A DNA stretch of 63,937 bases, the filler included, from Octopus bimaculoides (Eukaryota): NCBI RefSeq assembly GCF_001194135.2. It is 8 parts of 6 records of this genome, joined end to end, with 100 filler letters (N's around TTAATTAATTAA, not from the genome) between each part and the next. Parts side by side here need not be neighbours in the genome. Positions count along the whole stretch, not along the records: positions 1 to 17,129 come from NC_069004.1; 7 more parts are not named here. One strand, 5' to 3'. Positions 1 to 21,175 of this stretch are shown here, piece after piece. Under the pieces are notes generated by a model, which made no database searches, was not told the DNA's origin, and worked only from the letters and a program-made list of their open reading frames with translations. Within the stretch, counting starts at the first letter, position 1. Every line of letters begins with the position of its first letter. The translations under genes and the position numbers were made by a program.

Positions 1-29
1 ATATATATGTATATATATATATATACACA

Positions 30-364
30 CATACATATGCATGTATGTGTACATGCGCGCGCGTGCTCGTGGTGCCTTGCACGCGCGTGTGCACACCTGC
101 TCCCTTGTGCGCGTGTGCATGTATATACAATCCTACACTTCCACAATTTCCACGCATACACATGTATGCGGGTGCGTGCACGTGTGTGTGTGTGTATATG
201 TGTGCGTGGGCGTGCACATGCATGCACGCACGTGTGCGCCCGTACACACGCGCACATGCATATGCATGTATACGCATACATATAAAGTTCTCAAGCCATA
301 TACACATACATACACACACACACATACATATATATACATATATACACACACATATATACATACA

Positions 365-412
<48 letters not shown>

Positions 413-1026
413 CATATACATACATACACACATACATATACACATACATACCCATACACATATATACACATACACTCATACATACACATATATACGCACA
501 TTTCTACGTACACCCATGCACATGTATATACACTTGTACATGTATATGTATGGATGTACGTANNNNNNNNNNAAACCCTCCCAATAATTGACCATTCTAA
601 CGAAAAATTCTTATTTTGTTTCTTTAACCCCCAAATAAACCTACTAAGACTAGTACTAGCTATTTTACTCCTATCTCTAAACGTATTAAAGTGACAAGAA
701 ATTCTCTTACAAATCTTATCCGAAGAACAACCCACATAAACACTAACATCTGTATCGCTCTTAACCTTACACTGATACACTATATTCTTTAATCTTACGT
801 TCGGACCCTCAAACCATAACCACCTATTATCGAAAACAACACGATTAGCTGATAACTTAGAAAGCCTTAACGAAATATTTCTAACCACATACATGTGTAT
901 GCGTGGAAATTGTCGTAGAAGTGTTGTAGAATTGTATATACATGCACACGCGCACAAGGGAGCAGGTGTGCGCACGCATGTGCAAGGCACCACGTGCGCG
1001 CGCGCACACACATACATGCATATGTA

Positions 1027-1028
<2 letters not shown>
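30..1028. repeat. Inverted repeat pair, arms ~30-168 and ~888-1028
   Basis: gtggtgccttgcac...cacacctgctcccttgtgcgcgtgtgcatgtatatacaat...acaatttccacgcatacacatgtatg occurs on + at left and on - at right. Confidence 0.85.
573..890 (-). pseudogene. Penelope-like element fragment: GIY-YIG endonuclease with a short RT-thumb remnant
   Basis: Minus-strand frame reads ISLRLSKLSANRVVFD...NIVYQCKV...VYVGCSSDKICKRISCHFNTFR...TSLSRFIWGLK...LEWSIIGR, matching the PLE GIY-YIG pattern (IVY/YVG, R..H, T.LS.FIW.LK, W.I). Confidence 0.8.
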
Positions 1029-1085
<57 letters not shown>

Positions 1086-1370
1086 GTGTGTGTATATGTA
1101 TTTGTTTTTACATAGATTTATAGATATATGTATATGGCTAGTCATTTTATTATCTTTATCTTATGATATTTACTTTGTATTATATTATACTCATTTATTG
1201 TGCTTTTAATTATTAATTTTTCTATATGTAACAGTGGATTTTCATCGATGAGTTCATGAACCTTGGTTCTTTTCCCTAAAACTATATATTTATATATATT
1301 TTACTCTGTAAGGCTCAATTTATAAATTGATTTTAATTGAGTTTTTACCTGTAATTTTGGATTTTGTCCC

Positions 1371-1464
<94 letters not shown>

Positions 1465-1616
1465 TGTATGTATACATATGTATATGTATATATAAAAAAT
1501 ACAAAATGGGACAAGAACGCAAAACAATCGGGCAGTTAGGTGATACAAAAATGGGACAACAAAATATCCAGATAGACGATACATGGAAAACAAGGACGGG
1601 TCATTCGAAGTTTTCT

Positions 1617-2975
1617 TCTCAGAGAAAACTAAACTCTAGGACTCAAACGCAGGAATTTCATATGAAACCAATCACCTAATTATCGATGCCACTACAATCC
1701 TTTTACTACTTTCGTCTCGTAGGCTGAAGGTGTGCTGGTGCATATTACACGTGCGCGCACGCCCACATATATATATATACATATATATGTATACATGCAT
1801 ATGCATATATATATACATATATATACACATATGTATATGAATATATATATATGTATAAATATACATATACACATGTATATGTATATACATAGATATATAT
1901 ATGTATATATATATGTATACATATATATATATGTATATATATATACATATATACATATATATATATATGTATATGTATATATNNNNNNNNNNNNNNNNNN
2001 NNNNNNNNNNNNNNNNNNNNNNNNNNNNNNNNNNNNNNNNNNNNNNNNNNNNNNNNNNNNNNNNNNNNNNNNNNNNNNNNNNNNNNNNNNNNNNNNNNNN
2101 NNNNNNNNNNNNNNNNNNNNNNNNNNNNNNNNNNNNNNNNNNNNNNNNNNNNNNNNNNNNNNNNNNNNNNNNNNNNNNNNNNNNNNNNNNNNNNNNNNNN
2201 NNNNNNNNNNNNNNNNNNNNNNNNNNNNNNNNNNNNNNNNNNNNNNNNNNNNNNNNNNNNNNNNNNNNNNNNNNNNNNNNNNNNNNNNNNNNNNNNNNNN
2301 NNNNNNNNNNNNNNNNNNNNNNNNNNNNNNNNNNNNNNNNNNNNNNNNNNNNNNNNNNNNNNNNNNNNNNNNNNNNNNNNNNNNNNNNNNNNNNNNNNNN
2401 NNNNNNNNNNNNNNNNNNNNNNNNNNNNNNNNNNNNNNNNNNNNNNNNNNNNNNNNNNNNNNNNNNNNNNNNNNNNNNNNNNNNNNNNNNNNNNNNNNNN
2501 NNNNNNNNNNNNNNNNNNNNNNNNNNNNNNNNNNNNNNNNNNNNNNNNNNNNNNNNNNNNNNNNNNNNNNNNNNNNNNNNNNNNNNNNNNNNNNNNNNNN
2601 NNNNNNNNNNNNNNNNNNNNNNNNNNNNNNNNNNNNNNNNNNNNNNNNNNNNNNNNNNNNNNNNNNNNNNNNNNNNNNNNNNNNNNNNNNNNNNNNNNNN
2701 NNNNNNNNNNNNNGATATATATATGTATATATATATGTATACATATATATATATGTATATATATATATATATGTATATAATGTATATATATGCATATGCA
2801 TGTATACATATATATGTATATATATGTGGGTGTGTGCGCACGTGTAATATGCACCAGCACACCTTCAGCCTACGAGACGAAAGTAGTAAAATGATTGTAG
2901 TGGCATCGATAATTAGGTGATTGGTTTCATATGAAATTCTTGCGTTTGAATCCTAGAGTTTAGTTTTCTCTGAGA
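1617..2975. repeat. Inverted repeat pair (1617-1770 / 2823-2975) enclosing AT/ATAC microsatellite and a gap
   Basis: ~154 bp arms starting tctcagagaaaactaaactctagga; I count 5 mismatches. Confidence 0.85.
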
Positions 2976-3329
2976 TTGGCACACACGCATACACTCAAAC
3001 AAATACGCGCGCGCACACACGCGCACACAATTCCTGCTTATACATACACTAGCACGTTGCGTTGTTTTATTGTTTATTTATCGATGTATTCGTTTCTGTT
3101 CAGATTGATATTATGTTTTCCGTTGGACAAAGCTTTTGTTTATTATTTTGTTTTTATTTTAGGTTGTTTCAAAAATACATTTTTAATTTTGACTTTGTTT
3201 TTCTCTGTTTGTGTAGTGCGTGTTTGAAGCAATAAGGTGAAAAATACTACATGAATTTTTTGTTTTCGTGCGATATATTATCATCGTTGTTGTTGCTGTT
3301 GTTGATATTATCATCATCGCCATTAATTA

Positions 3330-4006
3330 TTGGCATCTGGAATGTTGCCAGTCGCTCACTGCACTCTATCTGCTGACCCATGAGGTCGGAAGAACGTCAA
3401 TAATTACGTTCTATTGAAGGTTTAATGTAACATAAATGACAACGTTTGAGGAATAATTTTCTGGGCTGTCGACAAGGACATGTTGAGTAGTTAGTTACTT
3501 TTGGAGGACGTTCAGGTTAGAGAATTTGGACTGTTTCCAAAAGTTCTCGGCTTAGTAGTATGAATTGGATGAGAGGGACAAGCGTTACTGTATCGGAGCT
3601 CCTAGTAACTGACCATGTTCAAGATGCGCGCAGGACAACGAAACTGTCCAGTAAACGCTAGTTCGGTTCTGTGTTTACATTTAATTTATTAAATATGTGC
3701 ATTGCTGATTTGTGGGTTTATGTCTAGCATTTGTTATCGCATGCGGGGCGGATTTGGCTATCAGCCGAGTCTGTCGGGAAGATTGATCCACTACCTTCCT
3801 TTGGCAAGGATGAGCAATTTCCCTCTGCCAAGATACTATGGAGAAGAAAATGGTGTGGTAGACGAAGCTGAAAGATTTAAAGACAGAGGGATTTTTGCTT
3901 TTTTTTTTTTTAACCAAATCCTTATCAACTTTCTTCGAGTGCCTTTTTATGAGGAAGATGAAAGTACACTGAACCGCAAAAGAAACACGATTTTTTCAAA
4001 TGTTAT
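3330..4006 (+). mobile_element. Tx1/L1-group LINE unit 0: 5'-truncated, decayed ORF2 C-terminus
   Basis: Aligns by eye to 12200-12830: ECCQSLTAL vs ECRQALVLL; tttccaaaagttc shared; PCSRCAQDNETV vs TCSRCEQSSETV; LWVYV*HLLSHAGRIWL vs MWVYAEELLSQLGRVQL. Confidence 0.8.
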
Positions 4007-4410
4007 NNNNNNNNNNNNNNNNNNNNNNNNNNNNNNNNNNNNNNNNNNNNNNNNNNNNNNNNNNNNNNNNNNNNNNNNNNNNNNNNNNNNNNNNNNNNNN
4101 NNNNNNNNNNNNNNNNNNNNNNNNNNNNNNNNNNNNNNNNNNNNNNNNNNNNNNNNNNNNNNNNNNNNNNNNNNNNNNNNNNNNNNNNNNNNNNNNNNNN
4201 NNNNNNNNNNNNNNNNNNNNNNNNNNNNNNNNNNNNNNNNNNNNNNNNNNNNNNNNNNNNNNNNNNNNNNNNNNNNNNNNNNNNNNNNNNNNNNNNNNNN
4301 NNNNNNNNNNNNNNNNNNNNNNNNNNNNNNNNNNNNNNNNNNNNNNNNNNNNNNNNNNNNNNNNNNNNNNNNNNNNNNNNNNNNNNNNNNNNNNNNNNNN
4401 NNNNNNNNNN

Positions 4411-6090
4411 GGGAGAGGTGCTATGATGAAATACGAAGATGTAAGTTCGTCCGACGTCGTGTTGTCAGATGGAGAATTGATGAATTACACGAGTGGCATG
4501 AAGAAGGAGCTGGCAAGAGGAGGAAAAGAAAAAAACCGGAAAAAGTATCCAAAGTTTTACGGCGGTGGCTGGCGTGTCGAAGAAAAATGTGGAGTTTGAA
4601 AGGCAGCACTTGGTAAAATACCATATGTTAAAACGGGAGGGGTTCAAAGTAGAACTGATCCCTTCTAACGAAATTACGAGGGACATTTGCAAGAAAACGG
4701 TGATATTTAAGACATTTGTGATAAAGGAGAAGAAGATTGAAATGGCAACTAAGGTACAAACTGAAAAGTGCTTGGCACCCATCTGGCCGGAAATATCGTA
4801 CATGGCCAGGGGCGCCAGATAAGCTACAGTGGAAGTGCGGTTCCTAACAGAAGAAAAGGCCAGGCAACACTCCGTGGCCTCCCAGAAAACAGAAGAAATT
4901 ATATTATTACCATCTTACCGAGGAAGACGTGCTTCCAGGTAGAGGAGATATCCCCGGAGGTGGATGTTTCCTGGCTGATGGCAGCAATAACGATGGACTT
5001 GGACGAGAAAATATCGATCCTCCAAACCACGATAACATCAACGCAGAACTGGCTGGGGCAGGGACTGGAAATGATCATCCAGGCTGACCCGGTGATTTGG
5101 AAGATATCATCGACACCATTGTGGAGGGTGATAAGAGATTGAGCGTTGTAGTGGAGGGCAGAAAGCCTCGTTGCTACGAGTGTGGCCAGAAGGGCCACGT
5201 AAGGGCGGAATGCCCTCCACCTCCCGCAAGTGAGGGAAACCGCACTTCCAACTATCGCGGCATCGAATTAGGGAGTATGCGAAGAGGAGCCATGTGCGAC
5301 GGAAAAGAAAGACTAACAAGTGGAGGAAGAGATAGTAAATGGATGGAATAAAGTCACCAAAAGGAACAGAAAGAGGAGGAAGCGAAACCACACCAGTGAT
5401 GATGACCCCCACTCTACACCCACCTTTCCCTACCCCACTCTACACCCACCTTTCTCTACCCCACTCTACACCCACCTTTCTCTACCCCACTCCACCCATT
5501 CCTACCACCGCAGACACCAGTCCTCGTCCTGCCCCACCAAACATTCACCCCGACCATGACCCTACAGACACACAAGCAGACATACAGGAGCCCCAAATTT
5601 CCCAGCCCCCATCCCGTGGAAAGAGTTGTGTTGTAGCTTTCAATGAACTGAATGATGTGCCGACGAAGAAAATAATTTAGAAGACATTGTGAAAATTAAT
5701 ATTCCTCCTTGTACGAAGAATCCCTCAAATATGAGATGCGTTCTTGGTAGCGGATGTCAATTTCGCAGACTGAAGGGGAAGTTCGGGGGAAGTGTGTACC
5801 TTACGAACATTGAAGCCGATATTGAAATATTGCCATCTACGGTGAGTCTTCTAGATATTTTAGAAAATGATGGAAAAACTTTAATAATGTAATTGGTTGT
5901 AAAAGAGTTCAATGTGGTCACTCGGAGTGTTGGGTTCAAGTGGCCGTCATTCCACCCATTCATTAATTTTCTCTCATCTTTATTTTTTTCATTCGTTCTT
6001 TTTCCCACTTATGTGGTTTTGTCAGTCCTTGTGCTGTCCCCTCTATGTTTAACTCTTTGTAGTTGAGTTAAAATGAATTCGAAATCCGTC
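4411..6090 (+). mobile_element. Tx1-derived unit 1: ORF1-only element (ORF1 ~4423-5892, 3'UTR 5893-6090)
   Basis: Frameshifted gag-like ORF1 (EKCLAPIWPEISY, TVEVRF..EEKARQH, CCHC knuckle CYECGQKGHVRAEC, Pro/Thr-rich tract) runs with no gap and no ORF2 into the same 3'UTR as the full unit. Confidence 0.8.
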
Positions 6091-8113
6091 TGCCAAGAAT
6101 TAATGTTGTTATTTACGGTCAGTGTAGTTTGTTTGCTTGTTATATCACTGTTGCTGAATTGTTGAATATTGTTATTGCGTGTGTTTAATACACCATTATT
6201 TTACTGCTTTGCATCGGTCCTGTTATCGTTTTCCCCTTGTTTGAAGGCGGAAACGCTTGTTGGGGAAAATGTATTTCAGTTATGAAAGGTTGAGTCTTTC
6301 TGATTCGTCAGAAAGTAAAATGGTGGAGTCTATGATTAATATGGAGAAGATGTCGAGAGAAAAACGAGAAAAGTGTAAAAAGTTTTGCGGCTGCGACAGG
6401 TACTGTGAAGGAGGGGTATGTCGTTAAAATGACCCCTTCTAGTGAAGTGTCACAGGATGTGCTAGCAAAAATGGTGACATACAAGTCATATTTGATAAAG
6501 GAGAAAAAATCGACGCGGCAAAGAGGGATCAAATTGAAAAGTGCTTGGGACCCATCTGGCCGGAAATCAAGTACTTGGCCAGGGGTAACAAGTATGTGAC
6601 AGCTGATACGTTTTCACACTGAGGAAAGGTCCAGGCAGCAGACCGTGGCCGCCCTGAAGACAGACGAGATAATATTACTACCGACTTACCTTGGAAGGTG
6701 TGCTTCCAAGGTAAGAGTGGAGGAAATCCCACTAAAGGTGGACGTTGCCTGGCTGGAAGCAGCCATAACAATAGGCTGGTGGTGGGGGGGAATATCAATC
6801 CTCCGTGCAACAGGAATACAAACTCAGGAATGGCTGGGGCAGAGACTGGAAATGATTGTCCAGGCTGCCCCGGAGGATCTAGATATCATCGCAGACACCA
6901 TGCTGGGAGGTGAAAAAAAGTTGAGGGTTGTGGTGGAGGGCAGAAGGCCTCGTTATTTCAAGGACCACAGGAAAACAGAATGCCCTTCACCTCCCGTAAA
7001 AGCACCAGTAATCCTACCAGTGGTAAAGAAAATCGCGCATCCACCGCCTGCAACGACAAATGTGGAGGAAAAGAAGACAAGTGACGAATAAAATGATAAC
7101 GAATGGTTGCCAATGGAAAGAGAAAAAGGAGGAAGACCCACTCCACTGATACTAGCCCCTACCCTATCCCCACCCTTCCCTCACCTTGCCCCACTCTACC
7201 CCCAATCTACCCCCGCAGACACCAATCTACCCCCACTGACACCAACCCTGCCCCTACAAATATACAAACATACACACAGGACCATCAAACTCCCCATCCC
7301 TTCCCACCAAAACTTCGTTTGTATTTATGTACGATATAAAGGCAAAAGAGATAGAAAAAAGATTAAAAGATATGATGAGAGTAATAAGGATGAACACGCC
7401 TGTCGGGGATTTNNNNNNNNNNNNNNNNNNNNNNNNNNNNNNNNNNNNNNNNNNNNNNNNNNNNNNNNNNNNNNNNNNNNNNNNNNNNNNNNNNNNNNNN
7501 NNNNNNNNNNNNNNNNNNNNNNNNNNNNNNNNNNNNNNNNNNNNNNNNNNNNNNNNNNNNNNNNNNNNNNNNNNNNNNNNNNNNNNNNNNNNNNNNNNNN
7601 NNNNNNNNNNNNNNNNNNNNNNNNNNNNNNNNNNNNNNNNNNNNNNNNNNNNNNNNNNNNNNNNNNNNNNNNNNNNNNNNNNNNNNNNNNNNNNNNNNNN
7701 NNNNNNNNNNNNNNNNNNNNNNNNNNNNNNNNNNNNNNNNNNNNNNNNNNNNNNNNNNNNNNNNNNNNNNNNNNNNNNNNNNNNNNNNNNNNNNNNNNNN
7801 NNNNNNNNNNNNNNNNNNNNNNNNNNNNNNNNNNACAAACTTGATGTCGTGTGTTGACTGTTTTCTTTAAAAAAAAGTGTTTTTAAAAAAAGAGAAAAAG
7901 TGACTCAAACTATAAAGGGTTTTTTTTAAAAAAAGAGTTCAATGAGGCCACTTGAGATGTGGGGCTCGAGTGGCTGTCATTCTACCCTTCATTTTTTCAC
8001 ATTTCATCGTTTTTCATTCGTTTTTTCCCACTTGGTGTTTTTGTCTGTCCTTGTGTTGTCCCCTCTGTATTTCGACCCTGTGTGGTTAATTAAGAATAAA
8101 TTCGAAAACCGTC
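6091..8113 (+). mobile_element. Tx1-derived unit 2: probably ORF1-only (ORF1 ~6320-7412 into gap; 3'UTR ~7930-8113)
   Basis: ORF1 homology (LLPTYLGRCASKVRVEEIP..VDVAWL, VVVEGRRPR). The 422-N gap is far shorter than a ~3.2 kb ORF2. The shared 3'UTR follows. Confidence 0.7.
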
Positions 8114-8311
8114 AGCCACCGTGTGAGTTGTTCTATTTTGCTACTCAATGGTTTTTTTTTTTGTACTATTATTTTATAGCTGGAATTTGTTTAACTCTTC
8201 TGTTTTTGTTTTGCGGAACACCTTGTTTTCTGCGTTGTAGCAGACTTATTAACTTTTCACCCTTGTTTGAAGGGGGAAATTAACATTTTATTTGTACACT
8301 TGCCTTCAAAA

Positions 8312-8906
8312 ATGAGTAGTTCTTCAGACGAGGAAACTACCATTTACGGTAAAATTTTGGAACAATTGATTATTGACAAGCCCACAGATATGAATAGGAA
8401 AATGGGAATTACTGAGAATAAAGGAAAAAGTATAAGCTTTACAGCAGCAGCTGGCGTTACCGAGGAGAATTTAAAGTTTGGACTACCGAATGGATAAATA
8501 CAAGGGTCTACTACAAAGGGAGGGGTACGAAGTAAAGTGACCTCTCCTGGCAAAGTCACACAGAAAACGGCTCGAAGGACTATTTTTTTACAAGACCTTC
8601 TCTGTTAAAAATTTAAAAAATCGACGTGGCTACAAAGGAAGCCATTGAAAAGTGTTTACGACCGATATGGCAGGATGTATACTACATAGCCAGGAGAAAG
8701 AAATACGCCACGGTGGAGGTACAGTTCCGTACAGAAGAGAAAGCCAGACAGCACTCTTCGGGCTCACTCAAGACAGCAGAGGTGGTTCTCCTTCCCAATA
8801 CCTTGGAAGGCGTACTCCTACGCTAAGGGTGGTAGAAATACCACCGGAAGTAGATGTTACCTGGCTCGTGGCCGCTCTACTCTTGGGCTTGGAGGATAAA
8901 ATTATA
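8312..8906 (+). pseudogene. ORF1 (gag-like) of unit 3, remainder in gap
   Basis: ATKEAIEKCLRPIWQDVYYIARRKKYATVEVQFRTEEKARQH; stops and frameshifts present. Confidence 0.8.
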
Positions 8907-9590
8907 NNNNNNNNNNNNNNNNNNNNNNNNNNNNNNNNNNNNNNNNNNNNNNNNNNNNNNNNNNNNNNNNNNNNNNNNNNNNNNNNNNNNNNNNNNNNNN
9001 NNNNNNNNNNNNNNNNNNNNNNNNNNNNNNNNNNNNNNNNNNNNNNNNNNNNNNNNNNNNNNNNNNNNNNNNNNNNNNNNNNNNNNNNNNNNNNNNNNNN
9101 NNNNNNNNNNNNNNNNNNNNNNNNNNNNNNNNNNNNNNNNNNNNNNNNNNNNNNNNNNNNNNNNNNNNNNNNNNNNNNNNNNNNNNNNNNNNNNNNNNNN
9201 NNNNNNNNNNNNNNNNNNNNNNNNNNNNNNNNNNNNNNNNNNNNNNNNNNNNNNNNNNNNNNNNNNNNNNNNNNNNNNNNNNNNNNNNNNNNNNNNNNNN
9301 NNNNNNNNNNNNNNNNNNNNNNNNNNNNNNNNNNNNNNNNNNNNNNNNNNNNNNNNNNNNNNNNNNNNNNNNNNNNNNNNNNNNNNNNNNNNNNNNNNNN
9401 NNNNNNNNNNNNNNNNNNNNNNNNNNNNNNNNNNNNNNNNNNNNNNNNNNNNNNNNNNNNNNNNNNNNNNNNNNNNNNNNNNNNNNNNNNNNNNNNNNNN
9501 NNNNNNNNNNNNNNNNNNNNNNNNNNNNNNNNNNNNNNNNNNNNNNNNNNNNNNNNNNNNNNNNNNNNNNNNNNNNNNNNNNNAAGTAAA

Positions 9591-12500
9591 ATGTTTATGC
9601 TCTCACTCAAACAAGGTTGCATAAATGTGCGCGGCCTGGGGTCGGATTGGAAGCAAGGTCACCTTCTCAAGTCACCTTGTTTAGATTTGATAGTCACAAC
9701 TAAGACTAAACTGAGTGGCCTGCAGACTTTTCACCTCTCCTAAATGATTACGGGAAATTTATTTCTCCATACCAACCTGGAGTGGGGGGTAGTCGCAGTC
9801 TTACTTGGGAAAGGCCTAGGTTTGAATATAAGAACAATTTTTGTTGACCCGGAGGGCATGTTGGTCGTCCTTGATGTGACGTACAGCAGTGGTAAGTCCT
9901 TCAGGTTGGTGGCTGTCTATGCTCCTTGCGGAGCTGGGTAGTCTGAACTATTTCAGAGGCCTAGAGGATTTTCTAGGAACGTCACACACTTTAGTTTTGG
10001 TAGGAGACTTTAACACAATCTGCGATGCACGCGTCGATCGTGTTGGCTCGAATCCCGATAGGAGGGGAAGCCCTTGCCTCAGCGATCTGCTCAGTCATTT
10101 TCAGCTGGCAGATAGATACAGACTAGACTACCCGGACGCTCCATTGGGGTCTAATAGCAATGGGGCGTCTAGATCTTACTTAGATAGGATAATAGTCAGG
10201 TGTCCACAATTCCATTACGTCAGATACAGTGATCACAACTGGAAACTTGATAAGTCGCTATTAGTTTGTGTACAGGAGCCGGATAAGACAGTTAGTAATG
10301 AGGGCATTAACCGGATCCACTATTAACAACAAATGGTGGTGTGCCCTCAAAAGAACCATACAGTTTGAGTCTATTAGATTTTGTAAAATGTTAAGTATTA
10401 AGAAAAATAGAATAGAAAGGGCTTTAGTTAAGGCTCAAGAGGAGGCGTTGAGGTTTGGTGATGCACCCCGAATTTTGGCAGCGACATTGGCACTCGACCA
10501 ACAGCTCGAAGCTAAACACGAGGGATGCATTATCAGAGCAAAGCTACGTGCAATGTGACCGGAGGGAATTAACGCTGTTGGATGGACTCGTGTGGTAGAG
10601 GCCCAGCGTGGCAATAATTCCACGTTAAGCTCTTTGACAGATCAACATGAGCGTACGGTAAACGAACCCGAGGAGATATGTAAGGTTTTTCACGAGCATT
10701 TCGCCCAGCTGTTTGCGAGGGGCGGTGGGCCGGATCGAAGAGAGGACTTCATAGACTTCCTCGCTGGTTCGCCGCGTCTCTCGGGGCAGGAAGCGATATG
10801 CTGTGAAGGTCCGATCACGGCTGCGGAAGTGGAGGAGGCTTTGTCGGACTGCGGCGGGCACAAGTCGCCGGGACTGGATGGTCTTCTCTGCGTGCTATAT
10901 TACAGTATGCCAGATTTGTTTGAGCACCTACTAACATGCGTCTACACCAACTGGCAACAGAATGGGTATATACCTAGATCTGTGAGCCGGGGGGGGGGGT
11001 TGTAGTGCTGCTGAGAAAGGACCCAAACAAGGGGGATATAGCACATAATGCAGAGCTGAAGATTTTGGCCAAGGTATTAGCAAAAAGGTTGGTGCGGGTG
11101 GTAGATGGACTCGTCAGGGAGGCACAAACTTGCGCCATTCCCGGCAGGACTATACATGACAATTTCTACCTTATACGCTATACCTTAGAAAGGGTTAATA
11201 GGATACCTGGCAAGGATAGGGCATTGGTCCATTTAGACCAATATAAAGCTTTTGATAGGGTTGACCATCAGTACCTGGCGGCAGTCTTCATGGCGGCCGG
11301 GTTTGGCCCGACCTTCCGTGGGTGGATCAACGCTTTATACAATAACATCAAATCGATCGTTCGAGTGAACAGTTTCTTCTCGGAATCGTTCTGCATAGAG
11401 CGCTCGGTCCATCAAGGATGTCCTCTCTCCCCCACTTCCGTACGTTTTGCCTCTTGAGCCATTACTGCGGAAATTGGAGGCTGTGAGAGTTGTCCCGCGA
11501 GATCAAAGGTGTGGAAGATCGGTTACGGCGTATGTGGACATCACCGTCATCGTATCCAGGAACCAGGACCTACAGTTGGTAGGTGAAGCCCTAAAGGATT
11601 ACAAATCGGTGGCAGGAGCAAAAATTAACCGCAATGAGTCGTTCGACTTGCAGCTCGGCACCTGGAAAGGCAAGTCGATGTCGTCCAACAGCGTCGTCGG
11701 ACGCTGGACAGACGGACTGGTTAAATTTGCTAGGGGTCTGGTTCGGTCCAGACCTCCAGATAAAGAGGAACTGGAGCGAGGTTACGAGCAGGGTGGCTCT
11801 CCTAACCCAGACCTGGTCTGGACGGAGGCTATCCCTGAAAGGGAGGGTGGAGGTTGCAAATATGTTTATTCCATCTGTAATCACCTACCGCTAAACCGTT
11901 ATGCCTTGACCAGATTCGTGGCTGAACAAGTTGGAACGAATGCTCTTCCGCTTTTTGTGGCAGGGCATAGGACCGCTTGTAAGGCACTCTATCTGCTGTT
12001 AGCAACCGCTAAAGGGTGGGTTAGGGATACCGTGGCTAAAAATGCGCGGGCATGCGCTGAGGTTGAGGCATCTCTGACTCTACCTGGATGGTGAGTGGGT
12101 GTGATCTCCGTTCGTCAAACTGATACTTCCTCGGTTCACTTCTTTCCGTGAGTTGGAACCATGGATCAAGCGTAGACCTAAGCTGGGAGTACGGCAATCA
12201 GAGTGTCGTCAGGCACTCGTGCTCCTCTCCCGGACGATTAGCTCCAGCAGCGGGGGCTCCACCTCGTCATTCTCTAGAGGGTTGGTACAGATCAAGTGTG
12301 ACGACGGTGTGGAGGAAATTCTGGGTTTTGATGATAGTCAATTTGCCGGCCTGTTCCGAAGAACATTCAGGCTAATTTCCAAAAGTTCCTGGCATGGCAA
12401 TGTTACCGAGGAGCCTTACCAGTTCGGGATAAACTCGCCAGGCATGGCTCTTCGATCTCGCCCACATGCTCAAGATGCGAGCAGAGCAGCGAAACTGTTC

Positions 12501-12847
12501 TGCATGCAATTGTGCAGTGTCCGAGAATTTTAGAAATGTGGGTTTATGCCGAAGAACTGCTGTCACAACTAGGAAGAGTACAACTGTTACCCGAGTTAAT
12601 AATAAAGATTATTCCACCGCCCTCTCTGAATAGGGAAGGGTGGGCATGGTTCCTCTCCGTGGTGGCTATGGTGAAAGAGATAGTGTGGAAGACACGAAAG
12701 AAAGGAGTCGTGACAGGTACCTTCATCTCCGACCTTGGATTGTTAAACTTCCTTTGTTTCCACCTCAAGAGGAGGATAAGGTTGGAGAGGAAGCACTTAT
12801 TACCTAGTATGTACGAGAAAATGCTGAGAGTGAGTGAAACCACTTGA
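9591..12847 (+). pseudogene. ORF2: APE endonuclease + reverse transcriptase + C-terminal CCHC, disrupted
   Basis: APE motifs INVRGL, LVAVYAP, LVGDFN, SYLDR, YSDH. RT motifs KSPGLDGL, ELKILAKVLAKRL, QTCAIPGRTIHDN, LDQYKAFDRVDH, QGCPLSP, LLGVWFG. C-terminal CSRC...H...C. Multiple frameshifts. Confidence 0.92.
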
Positions 12848-13017
12848 GCGAGAGCATAAAGGTTTCTATAATGTTCAGTGCTGTAATGTGGTTGGTGGGG
12901 TCGAACCTGTTCCGTACTTCTTATTGTTTTAGCATTCGTTTTATAATTGTTTGTCCTTTGTATTGTCCTCTCTATGTTTAACCTAAATGGTTATCGAAAA
13001 TAAATTCGAAATCCGTC

Positions 13018-14345
13018 CGTCGAGTTGAACGAACGTATTTTTTCTGCTGATAAGTTAAGTGCTTGTTGTTTTTGATTGTTATAGGTTTTCCCTTTAGGGA
13101 TTGTCTTTTGTTTGCCATTTGTTTCTGCGTCTTAGCAGGATTGTGTTTATAACTGGTTTCCTCGTTTAGGTGCGAATTGTATATCTTATGTGGAGCATGG
13201 AGTTGGACAACTTCATGGAGCAGTTGCCTGAACAGGAGTGCTTCTTAACAGAAACTCCAGAAAGCTCCGAAAGTAGTTACGCATCCATGGCCAGATGAGG
13301 CAGTTACGCGTCCGCAGACCAAGTCACCAGCGACGGAGTACAAGTCAGACAAGATAAACTCAATGAATATAAAGAATTACGGCAGAAGGATGGGACGAAT
13401 GTGAGATTGTCCCCCATCCCCACCCCACCTCGAGAAGGTTAGAGAAAACACAAAAAGGAAAACTATATTTTACCGGACTTTTTCACTGGCAACAAAAAAA
13501 AAATAGAAATGGCATCCATGGATGCTGTCGAAAAATGTTTGAACCAAATTTGGAACGAGGTAAAGTTCTTAAACAGAGGGAAACGTTTTAGTACGGTAGA
13601 AGTGAGGTTTGCTTCCGAAAAAGAAGCTTTAAAACACTCAACCACACCCCTAAAGTCGGCAGAACTGGTGTTACTGCCGACTTACCTCGGAAGACGGACC
13701 TCCAGAATTAAAATTGGGAAAGCTCCACAAGAGGTGGATGAGATGTGGCTGATAGTAGCCATAACGTTGAACTTGAAAGACGAAGCAAATATATTGAAAG
13801 CAACTAAGTCACAACAGCAGAAGTGACAATTTAGGCCACCCCAAGGGATCTGAGGGGGATCACAGATTTAATTATCTTGCCAGACGATACCAAATTCAGA
13901 ATTATAGTAGAGGGCAGAAGCCTAAGGTGTTACAAATGCGGGAAAAAGGTCACATAGAGGCCAAGTGCCCACAGGTTACACAATATGAGGCACACCGTTC
14001 ACCTAGCACATCACTACTACCAGAAGAACCAACAAGCCTTATTATAGAAAAATCCACCAACCTAACCATAACCAACAAGCCGAAGGAGAGGAAGAAACTG
14101 ACCAACAATGCGACCAACCCAACACAAGATATCCCAAAAGAAAAGAAGAAGACAACCGAGACCACAACAATGCATCCCGAAAAAAGCCCCAAGGAAGAAA
14201 CCCAAACGGAAAGAACACCAACCGAAAGCAGCGTCGAGGTGGAACCAGCCAGCAAAAGAAAGGATTAAAGAAGACTCCCACCTCTTAAAAAGACATCCAA
14301 CTGCAAACCAACACCAGCAACCACAAAGCACACACACAACTTCTG
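13018..14345 (+). mobile_element. Tx1-related unit 4: 5'UTR + ORF1 (from ~13188), 3' end replaced by antisense LINE
   Basis: MASMDAVEKCLNQIWNEVKFLNRGKRFSTVEVRF...LLPTYLGRR; knuckle CYKCGKKGHIEAKC; Thr/Lys/Pro-rich tail. Confidence 0.85.
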
Positions 14346-16116
14346 ACACTAAGACTGTGTCACTTGAGTAGAGATCTACTTTCCATTTCTTCATGCTACA
14401 GCTAATTAATTCTCTGCTACACTGAATATATTCAAACATTCATTTATCCATGAGTATGGGATCATGTCATAGGCCTTCTTATAATCCATCCTTGCTATTG
14501 TTAGATTTTTCTTTCTCCCATTTACTTCATTTGGAACTGCTTTGTCTATGTATAATAGATCATGCGTTCTTCTAGCCTTCTTCCTGTTCTTCTTCCTGTT
14601 CTTCTGGCAGTAAATTCTGGATGTCAAGGTGCTCGTAAATGCTTTCTGAATGCATTCCTGTTAACAGCTTACACACTAATGATAAGAAAATTATTGGTCT
14701 GTAATTGCTAGCTGTACTACCCTTGCTTTTGTCCTTCATAGGAAGTATTATCCTTCCTCTAGTCATCAAATCTAGTATTATTCCCCCATTAAGGCAATCC
14801 TGGAGTTGTTCCCTCAGCCTCTCATGTAAACTGCTAAATATCTTTAGCCAGTATCCTTGAACTAAATCCGGTCCTGGGCCCTTCCAATTCTGCATTTTTC
14901 CTAACACTTTATTCATTAATGCACTAGTTAATCTTAGATCTGGCTGCTTCTCACTCACTACTTCTTCCCTCACTTTCTTTAACCATACTGCATCTCCATA
15001 ATGATTGTCTGACTTATCCCAGATATTACTCCAGAACTTTCTAGTTTCTTATGCATTAGGTTTCTCATCTTCAGTATTTCGTTCTCCACTACTCATTTGG
15101 TTAAAATATCTCCTCTGGTCTGTCTCAAATAATCTATTCTGTTGATACTGATCTATTCTTTTCTGATATCTGGAGAGCTTCTTTGCTACTGCTATGATAC
15201 GCTTTTTCAACTCTTCTATGACAGTCCCAAATTCTTTCTCTTTGACTAAGTATATTTTTTTCAAGAGAATATTTAAATCTTGTGTTTCCTAACTTGTTCA
15301 GTTTCCCGTCTTCTATTCTACTCAGATCTTGTCTTAAAGTCTTCACTTTATTTTGTAATCTCCTTTTCGATATTTACTCTTTTCTAATCTTTCCTAGTGG
15401 AATATCTAATCTTCTAGTAACTACTATCCTTCTTGCATAGATCAATAAGTTAGTGTCACCTATATTTTTAGCATCTATCCTACTGATAACAGTAGCTACT
15501 TCCCTGCTCATATGTAGCAGCTTCCTTCTGATGGTACCTTTTAATGCTAACAATCTTTTTCTTATTTCTTCTCTCATTACTTCCTGCAACTCATCCAAAA
15601 TCTTCTGATCTTTCACACTTAAATAATTTAAATCGCTGGTGCCAGTTGTTCCTTCCTTGTTATTATTTGTTCCTTTACGTTCTTCTTTGGTTTGAGTTGT
15701 ATCTCCTATGTTGTATGTCTTTCCTACTGCCTGGTCTTTCTTTTCCAGTTCTCTCGTGATCTCTTCCACCTCCAATTCTGTCATCCACTTTCTTCTCCTA
15801 ATAGTATTAGCTTGATCAACTAATCTCTGCTCAGTCACTTTAAACATGCCTTTCTCTACCCAAAGTGTTCACATCCGTTTTCTATAGCCCCTTCTTTTAG
15901 GTTCACTTTCTAGGTAGCACTGCATCACTATCCTGTTTTCTTCGCTGGTCCACTTCTTCCTTTTTACTCTATTATCTACTGATACTGCATTAGGATAACA
16001 GCTGTGGTTAGTCTGCATCTTTACTGAAAACTGTCGAGCGAGAGGCCTTCCTTTAAAGATCCAGCATCATTTTCGCTGTTACAATCAGAGTTTCTTCGGA
16101 AACTCCTGTCTCTCAT
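14345..16116 (-). mobile_element. R4/Dong-clade (RLE-type) non-LTR retrotransposon, N-terminal half, decayed
   Basis: Myb-like KWTSEENRIVMQCYLESEPKRRGYRKRM..W.EKGMF.VTEQRL.DQ; RT motifs WKGPGPDLVQGYWLK, SNYRPI, MDYKKAYDMIPYSWI. Sequence stops before the QGDSLSP motif. Confidence 0.85.
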
Positions 16117-16158
16117 AAACTGAGGTAAGGTAACGTTCGTCACCGTCGTCGTCACCAC

Positions 16159-16275
16159 TGATAGTTTCAAGCATTTGATAGTTTCAAGCATTTGATAGTT
16201 TCAAGCATTTGATAGTTTCAAGCATTTGATAGTTTCAAGCATTTGATAGTTTCAAGCATTTGATAGTTTCAAGCA
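16159..16275. repeat. Perfect 17-bp tandem array (TGATAGTTTCAAGCATT) x6.9
   Basis: Six identical units plus a 15-nt partial, read directly. Confidence 0.95.
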
Positions 16276-16519
16276 ACTGTCTATTGCATCATTTGTTGCA
16301 CCTCTGTGCTGGTGAGGTGGTATGCGCTGCATTTTTCTTTTTTGGTGGGAGAATATTGTATTGCATCAGTATGGTTTGTTATGAGGTTTGGTTTCAGTCT
16401 TCTGTTGTATTAGTTTTTGTATTGTGTGTTTGTGCAGCGCAGGTTGTGTTCTTCTGTTCGATATCGAACATTATGGCATATGTTGTGGGCTTTGTTCATT
16501 ATGTTGGGTATATACTGTA

Positions 16520-16990
16520 TGAGTTTATTACTGTATGTTTTTGGAGGAGTGTTGCATAGTAGTGTGTGTAAATCATAAATCAACCATTTCATAGTATTCG
16601 AGTTTATCTGTCCCTCGTTCTTTCTTTTTTTGGTTGGTTTTATGGATCCGTATACTCCATATTTGAAAAATCTTTCAGGTTCCTGAGACGGTTTGCATTA
16701 AAACATACTTTTCTTTCGTTGTTTTTGCGGATTTTTAATTCCTGCTTCGTGATGGTTTCAGATTTGATCTATCTTCCCGGCAGTTCGCTGTCACACGTCC
16801 ATGCTGCTTGGTATTCGCTGAGGTATTTCCTGTATGAGTTTATTCCTGCATGTTTTTGGAGAACTGTTGCTTAGTAGTGTATGTAAATCATAAATCAACC
16901 ATTTCATAGAATTCGTGGTTATCTGTCCATCGTTCTTTCTTTTTTGGTCGGTTTTGTTGGGTCCGTCTTTACAGCGTTTACTTTTTGACA
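16520..16990. repeat. Diverged direct duplication, ~150 bp units at ~310 bp spacing
   Basis: gtatgagtttatt...tgtaaatcataaatcaaccatttcatag...cgttctttctttttt at ~16520-16660 and ~16830-16975. Confidence 0.8.
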
Positions 16991-17613
16991 GAACACCGTC
17001 CATGGACATGTGTTGAGGTTTTTTTTTTTCGTAGTTATACTTATTAATGATGTATACGCAAGACAGCAAAAAGAAACAGCAATGTGTATATGTAAATATA
17101 TATATGTATATATATATATATATATATATNNNNNNNNNNNNNNNNNNNNNNNNNNNNNNNNNNNNNNNNNNNNTTAATTAATTAANNNNNNNNNNNNNNN
17201 NNNNNNNNNNNNNNNNNNNNNNNNNNNNNGTTGAAATGATACTCTAACTTCTAAATAATTTAGTGTTAAATAAGTTATCCATTAAAGATAATCTTCAAAA
17301 AAACCAAATGAATAATATAAAAAACAAGAATACATATTATTTTCAAATAGTAGAAAATCATTTAGCAAAGTAAAAACAGAACTTATCCATATTTTTCCGT
17401 AACTCAAACTGAAACTAAGACGTTAACTAATACCTATAGCGTTTTTTAGCAATAGGTCACGTGAAAATACTAGGTTAAAATAGAGAATAGAATATGAAAA
17501 CATGAATGAAAGAATAATACTTAAAATAATGAATGAAAGATTTAAACTTTATATAACTAACAACAAAAAAAAGCCACAGCTATCTTATAAAACATATCAA
17601 TGAATTTTAAATT

Positions 17614-18857
17614 CTAATATATAATGTTAGTTTTAACTTGAACGCTGTATGGAATAATTAACCAGAGTTTGTTCTTATAGATATTATTGAATTTATTATT
17701 AATATTATCAAATTTATTATTATCATTGAAAAAATTAAAATTATATTTAAAATTGTTTCCATTAAAATTATCTTTATGTTTAGGTAATTTATTATCATAA
17801 TACCTATTATTCTTATTATTACCTAAGAAGACATTATCATGAGTATAAAAGTTATGTTTATTAAAAAGGTCATTACTATTATAATTATTAGTAATAAAAT
17901 TATAAAAATATTTCGGATTATTAAAAAATTTTATATCATTAGTACATCCCGCCTTTTGAAGGGCTTTATTGTAATAAGGTGCATGTTTTTCAAAGATCTC
18001 TATATTCGAAGATAGTAAAGATATTCTCTTACTTATAGTAAATGTTAATGATTTTTTAATTGAGGGTGGGTGATTGCTTTTCGTATGAATGTATTTAATA
18101 TTTTCATTAATCTTATGGTAAGGTTGGGTATTACTAGTAGATAAGTTAAAATTAGCATCTAAATAATTAACGTTATAGTACTCATTATAAATAGTAATCT
18201 TTAAACCATTTCTTTTAAAAAAACTATATATTATCTTCTTATATAATTCTAGTTTTCTATTAGTGCAATTTTTAGTAAGTAATAAGAGGTCATCTCTATA
18301 TAAACCACCCTCCAATTTTAAGTTTTCAAGTTCAAGTTCAGATAACAAATATATACCTACTAAATCAGGTACCTGTGCTGAATCAGGCGCCCCCATTGGT
18401 ATATCAAAATAGTCCCTAGTATCTTTCCTAGCCCACAGTTTATTATCATATTTAATCTATGATTTCCTAGCCATTTTAACTACATTTACTTCATCATAAG
18501 TTATACCTACTTTCTTCATAGCAAAAATTAGGGCCTTATTTAGTACAATTTCGTTAATAGAAGAATAATAATTATCAATATCTATTTGAATAAATTTATA
18601 TCTATATTTATCTTTAATATTATTAAACCAATTTAATGTATCAATTGTACTATTCCATAATTTAAGATAATTAATTCCATTTAATTTATTAATATATTTA
18701 TCTAAAATTATTTTACTTAATTTACCTAGATCTGACTTACAAGGACAAGTAAGCCTAACTTTAGGGTCAGAATAAAAGTTATCTTTATGGACTTTTAAAG
18801 TAATTCTAGGGTGCATAGGTACATAAGGTTCTGTCTTATTATCAAGTTCATATTTAN
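17614..18857 (-). pseudogene. Penelope-like reverse transcriptase (Naiad/Neptune-type), one in-frame TAG at 18457-18459
   Basis: ITLKVHKDNF, KVRLTCPCKSDLGKLSK.ILD, IDIDNYYSSI, PMGAPDSA, GLYRDD, VNYLD, SNHPPSI, W.IIPYS..VKTNI. The two listed ORFs are the same frame split by one stop. Confidence 0.9.
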
Positions 18858-19225
18858 NNNNNNNNNNNNNNNNNNNNNNNNNNNNNNNNNNNNNNNNNNN
18901 TTAATTAATTAANNNNNNNNNNNNNNNNNNNNNNNNNNNNNNNNNNNNNNNNNNNNAACCGGGAAACCGGGCCCATGAGCCTGGCTAGGCTTTAAAAAGG
19001 GCACATTTTAAAAATTTTATTTTATATATGTATATGCGTGTGTGGTGTGTGTGTGTACATGCATATATGCGGAGACAGATAGATAGATTGATAGATAGAT
19101 ACATAAGTAGGTAGGTAGATAGATAGATAAACAGACAGATAGATAGAGAGATAAATAGACAGACGTATTTCTTTGCTATTGTAGATACCGTGTGTGTCTG
19201 CGTTTGTATATTTATGTGTTGGTGA

Positions 19226-19289
<64 letters not shown>

Positions 19290-19880
19290 GTATATATATA
19301 TATACGTGCATACATTCCCATTTATGTATTTATCTTAATTATATAAATATATACATATATTGATATATATCCACACACAAACTCTCTCTCTCTCTCTCTC
19401 TCACGCACACACACACACACACACTCACTCACAAATACACACAGAACCTCACCCACACACACTCATTCTGCTCCAGATATTTTTGGGAAGGGACTGAAGA
19501 TTTAAAAGATTAAAATAGCCCCCGATTAACCTAGATTTACCTACAAATTAGTGTTATTAAGATTAATATTATATGTAGCCGTCGTCGTCGTTATCGTAGC
19601 AGCAGCAGCAGCAGCAGTAGTAGTAATAGTAGTAGTGGTTGTCCCTTATCTAAGTCCTGATCTAGAAAGACCTATGATCAAAGATGTACCAGCTGTGACC
19701 ATCCCATCTTTTACTCAGGCATAGTGTATCTAGGACTACATTTCCTAATGTATAGTATAGGAGTTAGCATTAGTGGTTACAGTTGTTGTTGTAGTTTAGT
19801 CCCAGGTCAGTCCTGATCCAGACAGACTTATTCAATGATCTTCCAGCTATGACCATCCCATCTTTTATTAATATTAACTT

Positions 19881-19922
<42 letters not shown>

Positions 19923-21175
19923 TATACATATATATATATACATATATATACACATATATACATACATATACATACATACATATACATACATACACACACA
20001 TATACATACACACACACACACACACACATATACATACACACNNNNNNNNNNNNNNNNNNNNNNNNNNNNNNNNNNNNNNNNNNNNTTAATTAATTAANNN
20101 NNNNNNNNNNNNNNNNNNNNNNNNNNNNNNNNNNNNNNNNNAAAAACACGGAGAAAAAAAATTTAAATGTTGTGGTCAGCGATCTATCATGGCGACACAC
20201 ACACGCACACACACGTCAGGCTACGAAATCCGCCCACAAGGATTTGGTCGAGCCAATGTTATAGGCTTTGGTTGGGTCAATGCTATAAGACTGTGGTCGG
20301 CACAAGCTGCCATGCAGCAGGACGGAACCTGGAACAATGTGATTGAGAAGCAATCTCCTCACTACATGCCACATCATTTCTTTTTGGGGTTCTTTTTTAT
20401 TTTTGTTTTTCTTGCCAGTATATTCTCGTTTTTTTTTTCAATGTATGGCAAACGCATTGCGCAGAAAATTTTAACCAGTTAGCGTTTGAAAATTTCTTAA
20501 TAACTATCAGTGAATGTGGTTCCAAGAATGAACCGATTTCCAACTTTTGTTCAAAAATTGCTTAAGGCTTTTGTAAATTTCAACAAAAGATGACAAAGTG
20601 TGAATTCAGGTATATAGTTTCGTCAATATTTAGTGAGTAATTTTAGCGTTATCACCTGGAAGAAATGGTTTATTTGGAAGTTAATGGGTGTGCCATATCT
20701 TAAAAGTTGGCCATATAATTGAAGAAACATTCAGTCATTAATCGTTCGTTAACAATAGCCATCTTGCTTGATTTCTGGCAAATCTACGTGCATGTGCATG
20801 TGTGTGTGTGCGTGTGCGTGTGTGCGTGTGTGTGTGTGCGTGTATGTGTGTTTGCGTTTGTGTGTGTGTGTGTGAGTGTGTGCGTGTGTATTATATATAT
20901 ATATATGTATGTGTGTATGTCATTTTATGCATATATACGTATGAATACATGTATAACATGTAAACTCATAAACATATAATGCATATATATAAATACATTC
21001 ATATGCATATGTGTGTGTGACTGTGTGTACGTATATCACAGATATGTGCATTTAAAATATATAATACATTTTCTCAACATGTGGAACATATATGAAGTGT
21101 ACATAGCCTTAAGGTATGTATATGTGCGCATACGTACACTCCACCACCAAATTCATCTGTCTATAAATATATACA

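Follow-up and report, generated by a model that had tools for sequence, protein, structure and literature searches.

The window, a stretch of 63,937 nucleotides from the Octopus bimaculoides assembly GCF_001194135.2, carries in its first part (positions 1–17129, from NC_069004.1) a head-to-tail array of five units of a long interspersed nuclear element (LINE), all on the + strand and located between about 3409 and 14268. From left to right, the array consists of a remnant of the 3′ end of open reading frame (ORF) 2, an ORF1-only unit, a probably ORF1-only unit, a unit with both ORF1 and ORF2 and an ORF1 unit that is cut, apparently by a rearrangement. Five same-strand units had been described in a first-pass annotation made from the sequence alone, and both the units and the peptides quoted there were found. 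The part considered is interrupted by runs of N at 563–572, 1983–2713, 4007–4410, 7413–7834 and 8907–9583, and the array region comprises four gap-free blocks (2714–4006, 4411–7412, 7835–8906 and 9584–17129). The units, with their 5′ untranslated regions (5′UTR) and 3′ tails, are as follows:

3409–4006, + strand: unit 0, 5′-truncated 3′ end of ORF2 (zf-RVT region), running into the gap 4007–4410
4411–6095, + strand: unit 1, ORF1-only, in gap-free sequence; ORF1 at about 4424–5680, tail at 5901–6095
6096–8118, + strand: unit 2, probably ORF1-only; T/G-rich 5′UTR at 6096–6269, ORF1 from 6270 to at least 7412, gap 7413–7834; in its right part an A-rich stretch at 7835–7930 and the 3′ tail at 7931–8118
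8119–13025, + strand: unit 3, ORF1 and ORF2; 5′UTR at 8119–8311, ORF1 from 8312 to at least 8906, gap 8907–9583, ORF2 at about 9600–12847 (endonuclease, reverse transcriptase, zinc finger), 3′ tail at 12848–13025
13026–14268, + strand: unit 4, 5′UTR at 13026–13187, ORF1 at 13188–14268 with at least two frameshifts; cut within 14269–14408
6072–6090, also 8095–8113 and 12999–13017, + strand: most conserved core of the tail, AATRAATTCGAAAWCCGTC, with at most one mismatch (0 occurrences expected)

The four ORF1 homologues, EKCLAPIWPEISY, EKCLGPIWPEIKY, EKCLRPIWQDVYY and EKCLNQIWNEVKF, were found on the + strand by stop-to-stop translation, by tblastn and by tblastx between the units. All four are broken by frameshifts and stops, and all copies in the window are dead. 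Disabling changes occur at approximately 2–5 per kb in every unit, a density that is uninformative on relative ages.

Unit 0 is very decayed, yet its earlier identification as the 3′ end of an ORF2 is borne out. Positions 3409–3551 and 3565–3887 are collinear with 12270–12393 and 12416–12717 in ORF2 of unit 3 (tblastx sum E ~ 1e-11; z of 20.7 and 6 in local alignments of the DNA), and the zinc motif ‘CSRC..ETV’ is retained (PCSRCAQDNETV versus TCSRCEQSSETV). No ORF2 similarity was found to the left of unit 0, which is why we regard it as 5′-truncated and as the left end of the array.

ORF1 of unit 1 contains three frameshifts and two stops, retains an intact CCHC knuckle (CYECGQKGHVRAEC) and is matched both by the octopus homologue P0019 (tblastn) and by the other units (tblastx). 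A profile of ORF2 found no match anywhere in 4411–7412, so that unit 1 lacks ORF2 for certain. The 220 bp between its ORF1 stop and its tail (5681–5900) showed no similarity, at the DNA or translated level, to the rest of the window or to six octopod loci. Unit 2 shares 74% DNA identity with unit 1 over ORF1, its tail is 76–82% identical to that of unit 1, and its ORF1 carries two private frameshifts and a 12-nt deletion inside the knuckle. The stretches 7835–7930 and 14269–14408 resemble neither ORF2 nor the tails nor any of the octopod loci compared. Tandem repeats were observed in the C-terminal Pro/Thr-rich part of ORF1 in unit 1 (5407–5492; 26 bp × 3.3, 98%) and in unit 2 (7202–7245; 20 bp × 2.2).

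In unit 3, the ORF2 domains PF03372 (Exo_endo_phos), PF00078 (RVT_1) and PF13966 (zf-RVT) follow each other in this order along 9880–12844, so that an N-terminal apurinic-like endonuclease, a reverse transcriptase and a C-terminal zinc-binding domain succeed one another as is typical of L1-like elements. The ORF2 profile of relatives maps collinearly from profile position 68 to 1123 and reveals at least eight frame breaks. At 11480–11510, the catalytic YADD is changed to YVDI (TAYVDITVIV versus SAYADDVTVFV in relatives), and judging from this motif the reverse transcriptase of unit 3 would be dead even without the frameshifts. Unit 4 is matched by residues 25–175 of P0019 at 13299–13760 (tblastn), and neither a tail nor an ORF2 was found downstream of its ORF1 by tail search or with the ORF2 profile. 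The unit contents given in the first-pass annotation thus stand for unit 1 and probably for unit 2, whereas unit 4 cannot be called ORF1-only, as it is cut at about 14270–14409.

The lengths of the assembly gaps are estimates only, and the continuity of reading frames over them carries no information. Read as estimates, the three gaps at 4007–4410, 7413–7834 and 8907–9583 are all too small for an ORF2 of 3.3 kb, and it is on this basis that unit 2 is probably ORF1-only. The gap 4007–4410 has 404 N, where the end of ORF2, a tail and a 5′UTR would together take up about 500 bp, which fits the earlier remark on its size. The gap 8907–9583 has 677 N, compared to approximately 667 bp expected for the remaining ORF1 of unit 3, and the gap 7413–7834 has 422 N versus about 85 bp expected if unit 2 has the layout of unit 1.

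The reverse transcriptase of unit 3 was compared with solved structures, a coarse comparison in which L1 and R2 are the only groups represented, and gave E = 5e-15 for human L1 ORF2p and 4e-7 for R2; for the relative P0002 the values were 9e-73 (L1) and 2e-23 (R2). Domain order and sequence comparison together place ORF2 in the L1 group, which includes the L1 and Tx1 clades. Membership in the Tx1 clade is consistent with the data: the knuckle of unit 1 matches PF00098 (zf-CCHC) with E = 8.6e-5 and 22.9 bits (cut-off 20.8), and it fits a Type I ORF1, which has been linked with Tx1, as have RRM/zf-CCHC variants of ORF1 in non-mammalian animals (PMC5203782). In the annotation of O. vulgaris, L1-Tx1 is the only class of the L1 group (PMC13282606). 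No named Tx1 or L1 references were among the matches of the protein searches or the cluster look-ups. A Pfam RRM was not matched in ORF1, and an AlphaFold model of P0019 computed with the window rows was unusable (mean pLDDT 42.7).

The three visible junctions are collinear in alignment, each with a conserved tail, a T/G-rich 5′UTR and ORF1, and two of them lie in gap-free sequence (unit 1 to unit 2 in block 4411–7412; unit 3 to unit 4 in block 9584–17129). The tail starts at most about 10 nt from the ORF2 stop of unit 3, is approximately 180–200 bp long and ends in AATAAATTCGAAATCCGTC.GCC. The 19-mer AATAAATTCGAAATCCGTC occurs three times in the window, once per junction (0 expected), and an AATAAA signal lies in the core of the tail, a few bases short of the unit end. 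Over a 75-bp core around the 19-mer, identity across the three junctions is 75–80%, while the rest of the junction between units 3 and 4 is only about 50% identical to the others. The tail is followed by approximately 100 bp of T/G-rich sequence that cannot be aligned between units, then by a conserved stretch of 60 bp and then by the start of ORF1. Between the first two junctions (units 1 to 2 and 2 to 3), identity is 76–82% up to the 19-mer, 44–50% just past it and 75% ahead of ORF1, the drop from about 80% to about 47% occurring exactly past CCGTC.GCC. The tail is the best-conserved non-coding part of the units and is present in the ORF1-only unit as well, as expected of a part that is recognised by the reverse transcriptase. 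The conservation of the 75-bp core is about what decay after insertion alone would leave.

A profile search of the window for further copies of the junction returned the three known ones only. A conserved RNA structure was not apparent in the tail (only four pairs predicted, −0.3 kcal/mol), and neither an Rfam family (E ≤ 1) nor a tRNA gene was detected in the junctions. All Rfam matches lie left of 3000 and are microsatellite look-alikes, with mir-297 and mir-3149 far under the gathering score. Scanning metagenome contigs with the 19-mer gave 27 loci, all of them chance matches without wider similarity. The T/G-rich stretch behind the tail has TTGTTGCTG..AATATTGTTATT in common with the 5′UTR of an O. 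vulgaris array (L029, see below), the start of which is fixed by the edge of that array. This homology identifies the stretch as 5′UTR and not as host DNA, so that, as the first-pass annotation had proposed, each 3′UTR abuts the next 5′UTR directly. Two other delimitations were considered and rejected. A unit start at GAGTTCAATG past the A-run is incompatible with homology that extends upstream of the A-run to about 10 nt from the ORF2 stop, and also with the edge of the O. vulgaris array, where the unit starts past the tail. The T/G-rich stretch has a composition suggestive of a (TTG)n-like microsatellite or of a host spacer serving as target, but it is homologous to the O. vulgaris 5′UTR.

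The units are not local duplicates of each other, but have independent origins. DNA identity between them is 59–74%, and third codon positions are more divergent than first and second ones in six of six ORF1 pairs (Fisher p 5e-4 to 8e-9). The divergence at third versus first and second positions is 0.57/0.25 for units 1 and 3, 0.65/0.33 for units 2 and 3, 0.67/0.32 for units 3 and 4 and 0.38/0.25 for the closest pair, units 1 and 2; across all pairs, divergence at the third position exceeds that at the first two by a factor of 1.5 to 2.3. The same excess was found for ORF2 of units 0 and 3 (Fisher p 0.008). Values of dN/dS between units range from 0.14 to 0.42, with off-frame controls near 1. 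A genomic copy that stays in place mutates neutrally; the third-position excess must therefore have arisen along lines of active elements before each insertion. The frameshifting indels that separate units 1 and 2 are all private to one or the other.

Additional evidence comes from relatives of ORF1. A scan of 1.8 billion representative proteins with P0019 yielded 158 ORF1 clusters, of which the named ones belong to O. bimaculoides, O. vulgaris, O. sinensis and Argonauta hians; relatives were also found in Logan run assemblies. In a neighbour-joining tree of 93 ORF1 sequences (90-column core, 100 bootstraps), in which the deep branches are weak because of the short core, the four units were monophyletic in 0 of 100 bootstraps. 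The interleaving with outside sequences is clear: other octopus sequences fall between the window units, unit 2 pairs with P0274 (69% identity, compared to 63% to unit 1), unit 1 pairs with P0341 and unit 4 belongs to another clade. Codon positions, private lesions and tree agree with the earlier statement that no recent tandem duplication produced the array.

Chromosome-scale records contained four of the relatives, and a fifth was located in short run assemblies. With the window included, arrays were found at three of six octopod loci, and they recur in other octopus genomes. The O. vulgaris locus L029 (OX597840.1:31862384–31883409, assembly GCA_951406725.2) contains at 4445–19184 an array of at least three full-length, apparently intact head-to-tail units with a period of 5273 bp. 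These units are 99.0–99.4% identical and each ends in a tail of the window type; the first has an intact ORF2, the second an ORF2 with a single frame break. At the left edge an unrelated flank precedes the first unit, the unit start corresponds to the position directly past the tail, and the first 130 bp are T/G-rich. To the right, the array runs into an assembly gap. Its two junctions differ by three mismatches and three indels in the last 22 nt of the tail, whereas to either side of this segment they are nearly identical, the next 60 nt containing one mismatch; this hints at separate junction-forming events. On either side of the array lie related repeats of approximately 200 bp (3972–4245 and 19409–20004) as well as (TA)n.

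The second additional array, L031, is from O. bimaculoides (CM046605.1) and has two full-length units of about 75% identity, with the tail of one directly against the 5′UTR of the next. These units also diverged under selection (third positions 0.37 versus 0.19, p = 1e-12). Both open with the identical 19-mer TTTTTCAAACAGCTGGTCG (9765–9783 and 15396–15414), to be explained either by target-site duplication at the left unit or by strong conservation of the 5′ terminus, and the 3′UTR of the left unit contains a (TG/TA)n microsatellite at about 15110–15215. L029 lies 31.9 Mb into a chromosome of 40.2 Mb and L031 65.3 Mb into one of 127.5 Mb, hence both are internal to their chromosomes. An analogy to telomeric LINE arrays, which had been raised in the first-pass annotation, does not hold for these two. 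Single copies were found in O. sinensis (L030), in Argonauta (L033) and on a Logan contig that belongs to the lineage of unit 4 (L034). Their flanks are unrelated: L030 lies in (ATT)n, L033 has a 16-nt target-site duplication and L034 has an unrelated upstream flank. The flanks of L029, L030, L031, L033 and L034 are mutually unrelated, and no common host target was seen among them.

Based on these results, we consider the array to be probably an old and dead cluster of L1-group (L1/Tx1-type) LINEs that was built by separate insertions of diverged sub-lineages, each joined to the end of a resident copy. A repeated insertion of several sub-lineages, perhaps at the element's own end, had already been suggested for this locus, and the codon positions, the lesions, the tree, the other arrays and the single copies support it. 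Exact abutment of units is not expected by chance in a genome of nearly 3 Gb. In the proposed course of events, incoming copies from already diverged sub-lineages would join the end of a resident copy on the same strand, with the terminal sequence of the family itself as the favoured entry point. Since the tail is conserved, A-rich and ends just past AATAAA, the complementary strand of the resident tail could pair with the 3′ end of the incoming RNA and prime reverse transcription. Entry at the 5′ boundary of the resident would fit as well; both the homing mechanism and its direction are inferred. L1 and Alu copies insert into each other's A-tails by such priming, and Zepp clusters grow likewise. 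Unit 1 keeps ORF1, has no ORF2 and carries a tail homologous to that past ORF2 of unit 3. Together with unit 2, which is probably alike, it therefore looks like a ‘half-LINE’ derivative. Such derivatives would need the ORF2 protein in trans, and we infer that they were mobilised in this way.

Several observations weigh against this interpretation. Two joins in the window span N gaps, namely that between unit 2 and its junction with unit 3 and that of ORF1 to ORF2 in unit 3. A clear target-site duplication was not found around any single unit of the window. If entry occurred downstream of the resident tail, some internal units should be 5′-truncated, but none of the six internal 5′ ends is incomplete (the window has three of them, L029 two and L031 one), and truncation is confined to the leftmost window unit. 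Complete 5′ ends fit insertion at the 5′ end, or a concatemer formed in one step, at least as well. The near-identical L029 array could stem in part from unequal crossing-over. In addition, only six octopod loci were available, found via predicted ORF1 proteins and thus biased towards ORF1-rich places. The structure as a whole rests on one gap-ridden window and two clean loci, L029 and L031.

A one-step concatemer would arise if, during a single insertion, the reverse transcriptase repeatedly reached the 5′ end of a LINE RNA and continued at the 3′ end of another. The junctions, which are exactly end to end and without filler, agree with such jumps, and a truncation confined to the leftmost unit is what jumps followed by a final abort would give. 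The results for codon positions and the tree are compatible as well, as the RNAs could come from diverged active lineages. However, the window would require four successive jumps over more than 10 kb, and for the L029 junctions, which differ only at the end of the tail, separate events are just as easy an explanation. Template jumping from end to end has been described mainly for the reverse transcriptase of R2 in vitro and for short chimeras of L1, and to our knowledge no multi-kilobase arrays have resulted from it. We regard a concatemer as unlikely. On the right, where a target-site duplication around the whole array would have to show, all three arrays end in gaps or in a rearrangement.

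The other explanations are all far less probable. An old tandem duplication, in which unequal crossing-over multiplied one LINE-bearing segment and the copies then decayed where they stood, would account for the collinear junctions and the common strand, and the constant period and 99% identity in O. vulgaris can come from unequal exchange. For the window it is contradicted and scarcely credible: decay in place would hit all codon positions equally, which is not what the third positions show, units 1 and 2 have no disabling mutation in common, outside sequences fall between the units in the tree and the units vary in content, with and without ORF2. Units maintained as selected host genes are excluded by the many frameshifts. 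An assembly artefact, in which contigs of dispersed repeat copies were joined by the scaffolder, is suggested by the three N gaps within the array, one of them inside unit 3. We judge it very improbable, as the junctions from unit 1 to 2 and from unit 3 to 4 lie inside gap-free blocks, units of 59–74% identity are too different for repeat collapse, gap sizes match the missing parts and the same arrangement is present in the chromosome-level O. vulgaris assembly. Site-specific insertion into a tandem host target, such as an RNA gene, a satellite or a microsatellite in the style of Keno, Mutsu, Dewa, Kibi or R1, would be in keeping with the target specificity common in the Tx1 clade (PMC4640811), with the T/G-rich composition between tail and ORF1 (similar to that left of unit 0) and with the location of one single copy in (ATT)n. 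However, neither an Rfam family nor a tRNA gene was detected in the junctions, the T/G-rich stretch belongs to the 5′UTR of the element itself and arrays and single copies have unrelated flanks. The comparison with Keno, Mutsu and Dewa made in the first-pass annotation is hence not supported, and a host target, contradicted by the flanks seen so far, has almost nothing left to recommend it.

A wider claim, that an octopod lineage of L1/Tx1-group LINEs homes to the ends of its own copies and thereby builds mixed arrays at many internal sites, can be put forward only tentatively, and we are inclined to doubt it. If the claim is true, the arrays would include intact, possibly active units in O. 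vulgaris as well as mixtures of autonomous and ORF1-only members, and they would represent a route from a LINE to a long tandem repeat without a host target.

LINE arrays are known at host targets (rDNA, telomeres, snRNA genes) or as rare double insertions. The L1-group element Zepp of Chlorella and Coccomyxa forms clusters of its own copies, which are nested, occur once per chromosome and are possibly centromeric (PMC3446292). Like Zepp, the octopus family is an L1-group LINE that clusters on its own copies at chromosome-internal positions, with the family and not a host gene as the apparent landing place. In contrast to the nested Zepp copies, the octopus units are cleanly head-to-tail, have complete 5′ ends and belong to clearly different sub-lineages.

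Head-to-tail tandems of non-LTR retrotransposons that arise by double insertion have been described, the R1 array of Drosophila among them (McGurk and Barbash, 10.1101/158386). Features in common are that elements insert more than once at one place and that the tandem can later expand by unequal exchange, and by analogy the near-identical O. vulgaris array may be at the later, unequal-exchange stage. Successive R1 units have a 33-nt duplication of their rDNA target between them, whereas no host segment lies between the octopus units in the window, L029 or L031. Most LINE tandems in flies join a tail to a 5′-truncated copy, which differs from the complete internal 5′ ends reported here. HeT-A, TART and TAHRE resemble the octopus family in forming mixed head-to-tail arrays of ORF1-only (gag-like) elements and elements with both ORFs (PMC5537684, PMC13534243), but they are Jockey-group elements added at chromosome ends, from which L029 and L031 are far removed.

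HAL1 elements of mammals are non-autonomous L1 derivatives with ORF1 and without ORF2 (PMC5753468), comparable to unit 1 with its ORF1 and the family tail. HAL1 families are dispersed in thousands of copies. Target-specific Tx1 elements (Tx1L in Tx1D, Keno, Mutsu, Dewa, Kibi, Koshi) share with the octopus family an L1-group ORF2, an apurinic-like endonuclease, an ORF1 with CCHC knuckle and the habit of inserting again and again at a recurring sequence (PMC4640811, PMC5203782). They target multicopy genes of the host, a different transposon or microsatellites; the only recurring neighbour of the octopus family is its own family copy, and its single copies have ordinary, unrelated target duplications.

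A family that prefers its own copy as neighbour would, if confirmed, confine its insertions to harmless DNA in a self-reinforcing manner. It would also readily supply long tandem repeats and offer a natural system in which to study how a LINE RNA, through its 3′ tail, and its DNA target find each other. Octopus genomes are unusually rich in repeats, and octopus LINEs have been linked to expression in the brain. A clustering L1-Tx1 lineage also matters for repeat annotation: ORF1 of L029 is annotated as ‘EPM2A-interacting 1-like’ and looks like a misannotated transposon protein. The papers on octopus repeats that were searched (PMC13282606, PMC8967140) make no mention of such arrays, and they may have been described elsewhere.

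The right edge of the array is formed by an element that does not belong to it:

14409–16066, − strand: fragment of an unrelated LINE with an upstream ORF at 15374–15868 and only the first half of the reverse transcriptase

This fragment covers only positions 5–97 of 205 in the RVT_1 profile and positions 440–605 of the ORF2 profile. Unit 4 and the minus-strand LINE meet tail-to-tail at about 14270–14409. As the two elements face each other and both lack their 3′ parts, this boundary suggests a deletion or rearrangement. The array may formerly have been longer, and unit 4 may have had an ORF2.

A further relative, from a eukaryote, was found in a metagenome assembly (L028; ENA ERZ21867824, contig ctg123344l), where 7935–14000 is a single full-length copy with 35% identity in ORF2 and 26% in ORF1. 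It is flanked by a 12-nt direct repeat (AAATCATTCATC), and hundreds of near-identical ORF2 clusters occur in the same source. Further repeats lie outside the array. To its right, a 17-bp sequence, TGATAGTTTCAAGCATT, is perfectly repeated in tandem 6.9 times at 16159–16275, and a 145-bp direct repeat of 88% identity is present at 16507–16651 and 16822–16966. To its left, 1–2975 contains (TA)n/(CA)n-type microsatellite tracts with inverted repeats, of which one pairs 1–171 with 1057–885 (87%) and another pairs 1617–1880 with 2975–2715 (92%) on either side of the 731-N gap.

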